A stretch of DNA of 63,256 nucleotides, filler included, from Olpidium bornovanus S191 (GCA_017911155.1; 27 parts of 27 records of this genome joined end to end with filler, not necessarily neighbours in it), one strand, 5' to 3'. Numbered from the whole stretch's first letter, positions 33,521 to 34,685 are shown. Made by a program: numbers and translations. Notes: a model not told the origin generated them from the letters alone.

Positions 33521-34685
33521 TTATCCCGCGACTCCGTGCGCCGGCGGGTTCGCGCGCACGACCCGGAACCCGTACGGGTTGCCGCTCGAGGCGTCGAAAT
33601 CGACGGCCCGCACGAGCAGGTCCACGCCGTGCGCTGACCCCGTTGCGACGCGATAGTCTTCTTCGACATCAATGCAATCGATTTTCTCCGGCTCCGCCTC
33701 CGGGTCCACCTCCGCGGCTTCCGGAGGCGGCGTTGCGCTTGAGGACCCAACGAGAGTTCGAGATCCGAGTCAGCGAGCGGAGTAACACGGCGAGGTTCTC
33801 GGGGCACACAGCGCAGCCGAAATTACCTGCCGCTGCTTGCCGTTCCCGTTCTCACCGTTCGACCGTTGAAGTCCTCAGGAGACGGGGCGACCGGTGTTGG
33901 TTCGGCAAACGGCAAGGTTTCATGGCTCCCTTCAAGCAGAAGTGATAACCATTTCCGCGGTCAAGTCAAACTCGCTCAAAAGGATGGTCGAAATCGCTCG
34001 TCTCGTACCGGCGAACTCATAGTCCGCAAGGATGTACTGCCCAAGCGGTCGCCGGGACGCTTCCGCCACGCTGTCATCTATCCACGATGGGTGGTATACC
34101 AGCGTGTTTTTCCTTCCCAGAAGGCTGGAACATTTCCGGTCCCCGCGGGCTGGAGTGTTTTAGACAGGGAAGTCAACGTCACCCACACGAAGAAACTCGC
34201 CGTACCGTTTTGTCTTCACACCCTGCTTGCTCGTCGCGAAAAAGTACTGGATCCCAGTCACGCTCGTGGAAGTTGTCGCCTTTCCGCCATGGGCAACTAC
34301 GGCAGCCGCGTACAATGAGTGGTGAACACCCTGGATGGCTCATATAACCCGCCACGGCACAGAGGGCGACGACTAACGGACCCCATAAGTCTCTGTACTT
34401 CGGCAAAGTGCTTTTGGAGAACCACGCCAGCTGCGGCGCCTTCGTGCGCGGGTCGACGAACAAGCTCGAACGCGTCCCAGACTGGTGCACCTGGGCACTT
34501 CTTCCGCCATCCATGGGGCGTCCTGTCGCGACCTGCGGAGTAAAGTCTCTGGATGTGTTCAGTGCTCCAACTAGTTGAACACACTTGCTGAAAGCCGGTG
34601 ATAAGCTCGGAACGGAGGCCTGGCGCCTCGCTGCCGCGGCACCAAGGTCACTTCGGTTTTCATGAGACACGCTTGACTTTTCCAT
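33521..34685 (-). CDS. TERB2-like meiotic telomere protein (BRCT-like N-terminal domain), multi-exon
   Basis: Splicing GT-AG introns 34381-34297 and 34205-34125 gives AWFSKSTLPKYRDLW|VAHGGKATTSTSVTGIQYFFATSKQGVKTK|RLLGRKNTLVYHPSWIDDSVAEASRRPLGQYIL. The terminal exon ends ...YRVATGSAHGVDLLVRAVDFDASSGNPYGFRVVRANPPAHGVAG*. Middle exons and true start are uncertain. Confidence 0.65.

Follow-up and report, generated by a model that had tools for sequence, protein, structure and literature searches.

What does the gene on the minus strand at positions 34685-33521 of a 63,256-nucleotide stretch of Olpidium bornovanus S191 DNA (GCA_017911155.1; the window, in which 27 records of the genome are joined end to end with filler) encode, and does a fungus carry a member of a meiotic telomere-attachment complex usually assigned to animals? 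The TERB1-TERB2-MAJIN complex is found "mainly in metazoans" and has been dated to the metazoan ancestor, and the supplement of the same study names neither a fungus nor a choanoflagellate (da Cruz 2020). A preliminary description of the window, made partly by comparison with human TERB2, proposed a TERB2-like gene at this locus. Analysis of a 2.4-kb piece (32893-35260) yields a transcribed five-exon gene whose N-terminal domain is a well-supported member of the TERB2 family, and homology with TERB2 is close to certain. The gene thereby adds to the known TERB2 family, whose origin the published view places in Metazoa.

Joined across four GT-AG introns of 85, 81, 79, and 89 nt, the five exons form an open frame of 276 codons with 61% G+C, ending at a TAA at 33523-33521; an in-frame TAG lies shortly upstream of the ATG at 34685. 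Exon 1 (34382..34685, on the minus strand like every feature of the gene) runs from this ATG to W101 plus one base. Intron 1 (34297..34381, 85 nt) interrupts in phase 1 the codon that follows the invariant Trp, between W and VAHGG. Exon 2 (34206..34296) starts at V102 and ends two bases into the R132 codon, and intron 2 (34125..34205, 81 nt) lies in phase 2 within the R132 codon. Exon 3 (34009..34124) carries the VYHPSWIDDSV and LGQYIL motifs and is followed by intron 3 (33930..34008, 79 nt), in phase 1 within a Gly codon six residues past YIL. Exon 4 (33827..33929) encodes a proline-rich linker, intron 4 (33738..33826, 89 nt) splits a Ser codon in phase 2, and the coding part of exon 5 (33521..33737) closes the frame with the TAA.

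The transcript is present in eight RNA runs of small size (X1-X8), which share the organism label and come from two studies. All four junctions appear as clean joints in contigs assembled from runs X1 and X4 (two studies), at 33737/33827, 33928/34008 (cut one place on), 34124/34206, and 34296/34382. A single 657-nt RNA contig covers four exons and extends 30 nt into exon 1. Introns 1 and 2 had already been named in the preliminary description, and both stand, with GT-AG ends and joints in contigs from the two studies; introns 3 and 4 join the last exon of that description in frame to the exons upstream.

The assignment to the TERB2 family comes from the spliced protein. The core queried against Pfam and PDB sequences comprised residues 70-174 (105 residues). 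Pfam TERB2 (PF15101) matches this core with 33.2 bits (E 6.7e-8), over its curated cut-off of 27, along profile positions 3-88 of 207. The score exceeds that of every BRCT model, the best of which, BRCT_2 (PF16589), reaches 19.4 bits and stays under its cut-off of 27.3. As delimited by Pfam and an independent profile, the domain covers spliced residues 84-165, a genomic span of 34025..34436 that includes introns 1 and 2. Single exon pieces, exon 5 included, matched no Pfam family, in keeping with the earlier statement that the protein is absent from the six-frame open reading frames (ORFs); the domain is spread across three exons. The exon-1 ORF alone gave no match as a protein homology query.

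A control profile was made from 93 N-terminal domains of TERB2, most of them animal. Not included were the window pieces, the proteins of fungi and holozoan protists, and most of the unnamed rows placed apart from the animal groups in the tree described below. This profile gives the spliced protein 35.9 bits along residues 85-166, against a maximum of 6.6 bits among 5000 shuffles of the core. The colinear N-terminal resemblance claimed in the preliminary description is therefore far above chance in both profiles. The human TERB2 N-terminus used there proved accurate: a query of its 88 residues plus 12 more has 95% identity to macaque TERB2 across all 100 residues searched. A profile of 63 family sequences (A6), run against all PDB sequences, retrieves human TERB2 (6j07_A) alone, at E 7.7e-32. 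In the same search no BRCT domain is significant, the nearest being that of yeast Rap1 at E 2. The match is therefore specific to TERB2 and does not reflect a general BRCT effect. In the 63-sequence alignment, 12 columns are conserved at 90% or more; the window protein agrees with eight, including all four invariant columns (two Trp, one Gly, and one Phe), and deviates at F2, A37, S42, and D49 in Calcarisporiella numbering. It thus carries the hallmark residues of the family domain, which lie in AWFS, at the helix-1 Trp, in GG, and at the Phe of strand 3. A vertebrate-only profile gives the window protein just 12 bits, which shows why simple searches overlook the gene.

The intron positions provide a second line of evidence. 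In mammalian TERB2 genomic DNA (L001), the sequence TGG G/gtagg...cacag/TC GCT places a phase-1 intron in the codon past the helix-1 Trp, and exon 2 ends with CTG AG/gtactc, where a phase-2 intron interrupts the Arg codon preceding IYQ. The window gene reads TGG G/gtccgt...cgtag/TT GCC at intron 1 and AAA CG/gtacgg...tccag/C CTT at intron 2, the latter two codons past DT. With exact mapping of the genes of Trichoplax, Corticium, Salpingoeca rosetta, and Calcarisporiella, introns 1 (phase 1) and 2 (phase 2) fall at identical aligned codons in these four, the mammal, and the window. That two introns coincide exactly in six lineages would be very improbable had the gene not been inherited from a common ancestor, and the window gene retains the two ancestral TERB2 introns. 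Whether the intron after the Trp is shared with animals had been set beforehand as a test; it is, and so is intron 2. The Calcarisporiella gene resembles the window gene further, with five exons and intron phases 1, 2, 1, and 2. Its intron 3 likewise interrupts a Gly codon in phase 1, five residues past YVL, where the window gene has it six residues past YIL. The fourth introns of the two genes share their phase and lie in linkers that are not alignable.

Relatives of the window protein were collected with profiles. The family seed was a search with the human TERB2 N-terminus; it yielded 32 fragments from vertebrates, each with a PF15101 tag. The main search profile (A4) combined the vertebrate domains with the exon-1 tail and exon 3 of the window gene; exons 2 and 5 were kept out, as they misaligned when combined with the vertebrate sequences. 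Against 1.84 billion representative proteins, this profile gave 196 matches at E up to 0.001, of which 150 were listed. Among these 150, the nearest relative of the window protein comes from the fungus Calcarisporiella thermophila (XP_069253548.1, uncharacterized, 308 aa, 43 bits). Next among the matches listed are a metagenomic protein, a protein of Syssomonas multiformis, and TERB2-like proteins of a starfish, a scallop, and a brittle star; further named ones include S. rosetta PTSG_06632, the sponges Corticium and Oscarella, Trichoplax, and a soft coral. A search with a broader alignment (A5), dominated by polyglutamine, returned two already-known members only. PF15101 matches the S. rosetta protein with 230 bits over the full model, the Syssomonas protein with 65 bits, and the Calcarisporiella protein with 52 bits, the last also having a sub-threshold BRCT_2 match of 20.3 bits. 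The S. rosetta and Calcarisporiella proteins carry precomputed PF15101 tags in databases, and the Capitella member is named BRCT domain-containing protein in UniRef.

In a quick tree of 106 domains, the window protein joins Calcarisporiella and Syssomonas, with weak support (79) and long branches, and the three lie outside the 103 remaining rows, which are mostly animal. Taken together with a deletion, intron 3, and the exon count shared with the Calcarisporiella gene, the tree fits a vertically inherited fungal gene. The Calcarisporiella gene (L002 8212-12585) has a Translin gene on one side and, on the other, an unannotated 308-aa gene that matches nothing in Pfam. In the ESM Atlas, feature neighbours of Calcarisporiella residues 1-100 (P0164) include two unannotated clusters, mainly Basidiomycota by label. 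One is a 98-aa protein (score 0.90; phylum known for one of 58 members), and the other a 260-aa protein named "BRCT domain-containing protein". As a lead only, TERB2-like proteins may be more widespread in fungi.

The TERB2 N-terminal domain has been described only as a three-stranded sheet with six helices (Wang 2019, PMC6361898). An AlphaFold model of Calcarisporiella residues 1-100, computed with the family alignment, has a mean predicted local distance difference test score (pLDDT) of 90, and its elements, four strands in a parallel sheet and three helices, follow the BRCT order beta1, alpha1, beta2, beta3, alpha2, beta4, alpha3. Foldseek matches the model to BRCT domains of XRCC1, REV1, and ligase IV and to human TERB2 6j07_A. 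On 6j07_A it superposes with a template modelling (TM) score of 0.70 and a root-mean-square deviation of 2.2 A, and the identity of that chain to the Calcarisporiella domain (27-29%) is the highest of any fold match. A second aligner gives Z 11-12.4 against many BRCT domains and 11.6 against 6j07_A, and a structure search of the ESM Atlas places a chordate TERB2 cluster on top (TM 0.80). The TERB2 N-terminal domain itself, that of human 6J07 included, is a BRCT fold; the window domain is predicted to be one through its homology with the confidently modelled Calcarisporiella relative. Since XRCC1, REV1, ligase IV, and TERB2 all score alike, the fold alone cannot assign the gene, and the sequence profile and introns do. 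Of the members scanned, those from fungi stay closer to BRCT in sequence than the holozoan ones do, with their sub-threshold BRCT_2 matches and a WIxDSV motif. The searched library contains no paper that combines TERB2, MAJIN, and BRCT, and in none was a connection of the TERB2 N-terminal domain with the BRCT fold found.

What such a protein would do in this fungus is a separate matter. The best explanation overall, held with slightly more than even confidence, is that the gene is a true, expressed orthologue of animal TERB2 acting as a meiotic telomere adaptor; for the meiotic tethering role taken by itself, the evidence is evenly balanced. The window protein would be a two-ended adaptor like TERB2. 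Its BRCT-fold domain would dock one partner, which in animals is the zinc helix-turn-helix of TERB1. Past a proline- and acid-rich linker, a short, ordered-looking C-terminal segment would bind a second partner, in animals the inner-nuclear-membrane protein MAJIN, and the outcome would be telomeres tied to the nuclear envelope in meiotic prophase. An animal-type bouquet complex might then survive in this lineage and the organism be capable of meiosis, as the preliminary description supposed.

Several observations weigh against this functional reading. The C-terminal segment I224-P269 (33545..33682) had been likened by eye to the MAJIN-binding motif, for which the C-terminal consensus is DFIPGxNGCxV. 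The likeness does not rise above chance: a profile made from 51 C-termini of TERB2 gives the window tail -1.5 bits, a value that 415 of 2000 shuffles match or exceed, and pairwise local alignment with nine family tails gives z below 1. Three coding differences distinguish the RNA strains from the window (33571, 33637, and 34518). Gly261Arg occurs in the RNA of both studies and replaces the Gly of the supposed PYGF motif; Ser239Ala occurs in X1 only, and the change at codon 56 is silent. Both amino-acid differences thus fall within the C-terminal segment. By eye, the window tail also resembles that of S. rosetta (RVVKA versus RVVRA), a lead and not a result.

At the other end, human TERB2 Asp55, Glu58, Asp59, and Gln110 touch TERB1, and helices alpha3 and alpha6 make the groove (Wang 2019, PMC6361898). 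The window protein has a five-residue gap at human DYIED, the loop of D55, E58, and D59, as does the Calcarisporiella protein. Proline-rich sequence follows YIL in place of helix alpha6, and the Pfam match stops at profile position 88. Among the RNA data, two large runs with the same species label (X18 and X12) have no reads on the piece and so provide no test.

These features would suit a protein of the same family with another job, a possibility to be taken seriously although it is judged to fall short of even. Here the BRCT-fold domain would serve other partners, for example in DNA-damage or chromatin signalling or in a telomere adaptor unlike TERB1-MAJIN, and the animal bouquet complex would have been built later around an ancestral TERB2 scaffold. 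The absence of the TERB1-contact loop and helix alpha6, the undetectable MAJIN-binding motif, and transcripts drawn from eight small runs of unknown conditions all accord with it. So does the more BRCT-like character of the fungal pair, in which BRCT_2 reaches 19.4 and 20.3 bits, WIxDSV is kept, and the window core gives weak REV1 matches. However, the Calcarisporiella tail scores 10 bits on the profile of 51 C-termini and has a clear DYTPNRNGF, retaining the pattern DYxPxxNGF; the best window-tail shuffle reaches 4.8. In addition, the S. rosetta protein matches all 207 Pfam positions, tail included, and the two-ended architecture is therefore older than animals. A meiotic adaptor orthologous to animal TERB2 remains the preferred explanation.

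A generic BRCT protein that resembles TERB2 by chance or through a shared fold was considered and rejected. The fold search, with Z of 11-12, does not separate TERB2 from the BRCT domains of XRCC1, REV1, and Lig4. Moreover, a single-sequence search of the spliced core against PDB found no TERB2 chain and weak REV1 BRCT matches only (E about 0.1). Yet the TERB2 profile leads BRCT_2 by 14 bits and lies over its curated cut-off, the family profile has no cross-match to BRCT domains, shuffles peak far below the 35.9 bits of the control profile, and two intron positions with their phases are common to six lineages. Such an origin is thus largely refuted and very improbable; generic BRCT matches were not all that was found, and the transcripts use the proposed junctions. 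Contamination of the assembly with animal DNA, or a gene recently acquired from an animal, is suggested by the mere 2.4 kb of the piece and is equally improbable given the weakly supported, long-branched tree position outside 103 mostly animal rows, the five-residue loop deletion, intron 3, and exon count in common with the Calcarisporiella gene, the 61% G+C of the coding sequence, the introns of 79-89 nt, and the presence in eight same-label RNA runs from two studies.

The gene product is 276 aa long, or 219 aa if translation starts at Met58. An RNA contig (X4 record 10) is continuous over 34382-34732 and crosses the ATG at 34685. X1 contigs, and these only, contain joints of an alternative 5' GC-AG intron (34533..34702, minus strand) whose donor, GCAAGT at 34702, is spliced to either of two acceptors, 34631 (72 nt) and 34533 (170 nt). 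Each of these forms deletes the ATG at 34685 and a short upstream ORF at 34663; there are therefore two candidate N-termini, and the next in-frame ATG, at 34514 (Met58), gives the 219-aa product. Further upstream, two joints within 34728-34946 (34728/34819, with non-canonical ends, and 34791/34946, GT..AG on the plus strand) may be exons of the 5' untranslated region (UTR), a plus-strand transcript, or assembly artefacts. In the 3' UTR, a long (GA)n/(TC)n microsatellite (33424-33508) starts about ten bases past the stop codon, and RNA contigs shorten or break there (X4 record 8 has 11 nt, compared with 186 nt in the window). Downstream of the gene, 33004-33322 is transcribed (X1 record 1; connected to the gene in X4 record 8) and has no convincing ORF; a long 3' UTR and a separate transcript next to the gene are the two readings.

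For the history of TERB2, the consequence is an earlier date. A pre-animal origin of the family is well supported, with backing from members in C. thermophila, Syssomonas, and S. rosetta. With the window and Calcarisporiella genes as bona fide fungal TERB2 genes that share introns with the animal ones, the origin of at least this component moves back to the opisthokont ancestor, the level put forward in the preliminary description. In the searched library, the literature on TERB2, MAJIN, evolution, and fungi reports no fungal member in its titles and abstracts; choanoflagellates are connected with TERB2 in none of the papers, nor are holozoan protists with TERB1 or MAJIN. Given that databases already tag Calcarisporiella and S. 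rosetta with PF15101, the fungal membership is unpublished rather than invisible. A more tentative scenario, possible though short of probable, is that telomeres were already joined to the nuclear envelope by a system centred on TERB2 in the animal-fungal ancestor, and that this system still works in meiosis in early-branching fungi but was replaced in yeasts by Bqt1/2 and Ndj1. TERB2 would then be a BRCT domain taken from the DNA-repair toolkit, and the fungal proteins would be the least derived. The gene is a concrete candidate for meiosis research in fungi with little-studied sexual cycles.

Among known systems, the yeast proteins Bqt1/Bqt2 and Ndj1 have, to our knowledge, no reported sequence relation to TERB1-TERB2-MAJIN, and published work stresses that the bouquet proteins of fungi are unrelated to the animal ones. 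The BRCT domains of REV1, XRCC1, and DNA ligase IV share the beta-alpha-beta-beta-alpha-beta-alpha fold (Z 11-12, from the model of the fungal relative) and the W..GG and WIxDS motifs. However, the window protein stays under the BRCT_2 cut-off (19.4 versus 27.3 bits), and those proteins are large repair enzymes, not a small stand-alone adaptor, and show no cross-match with the TERB2 profile. Structures are available for the human proteins, of TERB2 with TERB1 (6J07) and of the TERB2-MAJIN complex. Animal TERB2 and the window protein are alike in the family and fold of the N-terminal domain, in the first two intron positions and phases, and in the placement of the domain near the N-terminus, with a lead-in of 29 or 86 residues in the window protein depending on the start. 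Both continue with a disordered linker and a short C-terminal segment, and they are similar in size (219 aa from Met58, compared with 220 aa in human). They differ in sequence, with identity of about 30% or less, in the five-residue deletion at human D55/E58/D59, and in the lack of helix alpha6 past YxL in the window protein. The window protein also reads YILAD where da Cruz 2020 notes an [F/Y]xLxP motif, lacks a detectable MAJIN-binding motif, and has a possible 57-aa N-terminal extension. S. rosetta PTSG_06632 and the S. multiformis protein are likewise TERB2 members outside animals, and S. rosetta has introns 1 and 2. The Pfam match of S. rosetta (230 bits) runs through the entire model, loop and tail included, whereas that of the window protein is limited to positions 3-88. 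Calcarisporiella XP_069253548.1 differs in beginning directly at MFQG, as animal TERB2 does, in a much longer linker, and in a tail of its own that keeps DYTPNRNGF. It nevertheless shares with the window protein the loop deletion, the SWIxDSV motif, five exons with phases 1, 2, 1, and 2, and a passing Pfam TERB2 match accompanied by a sub-threshold BRCT_2 match.
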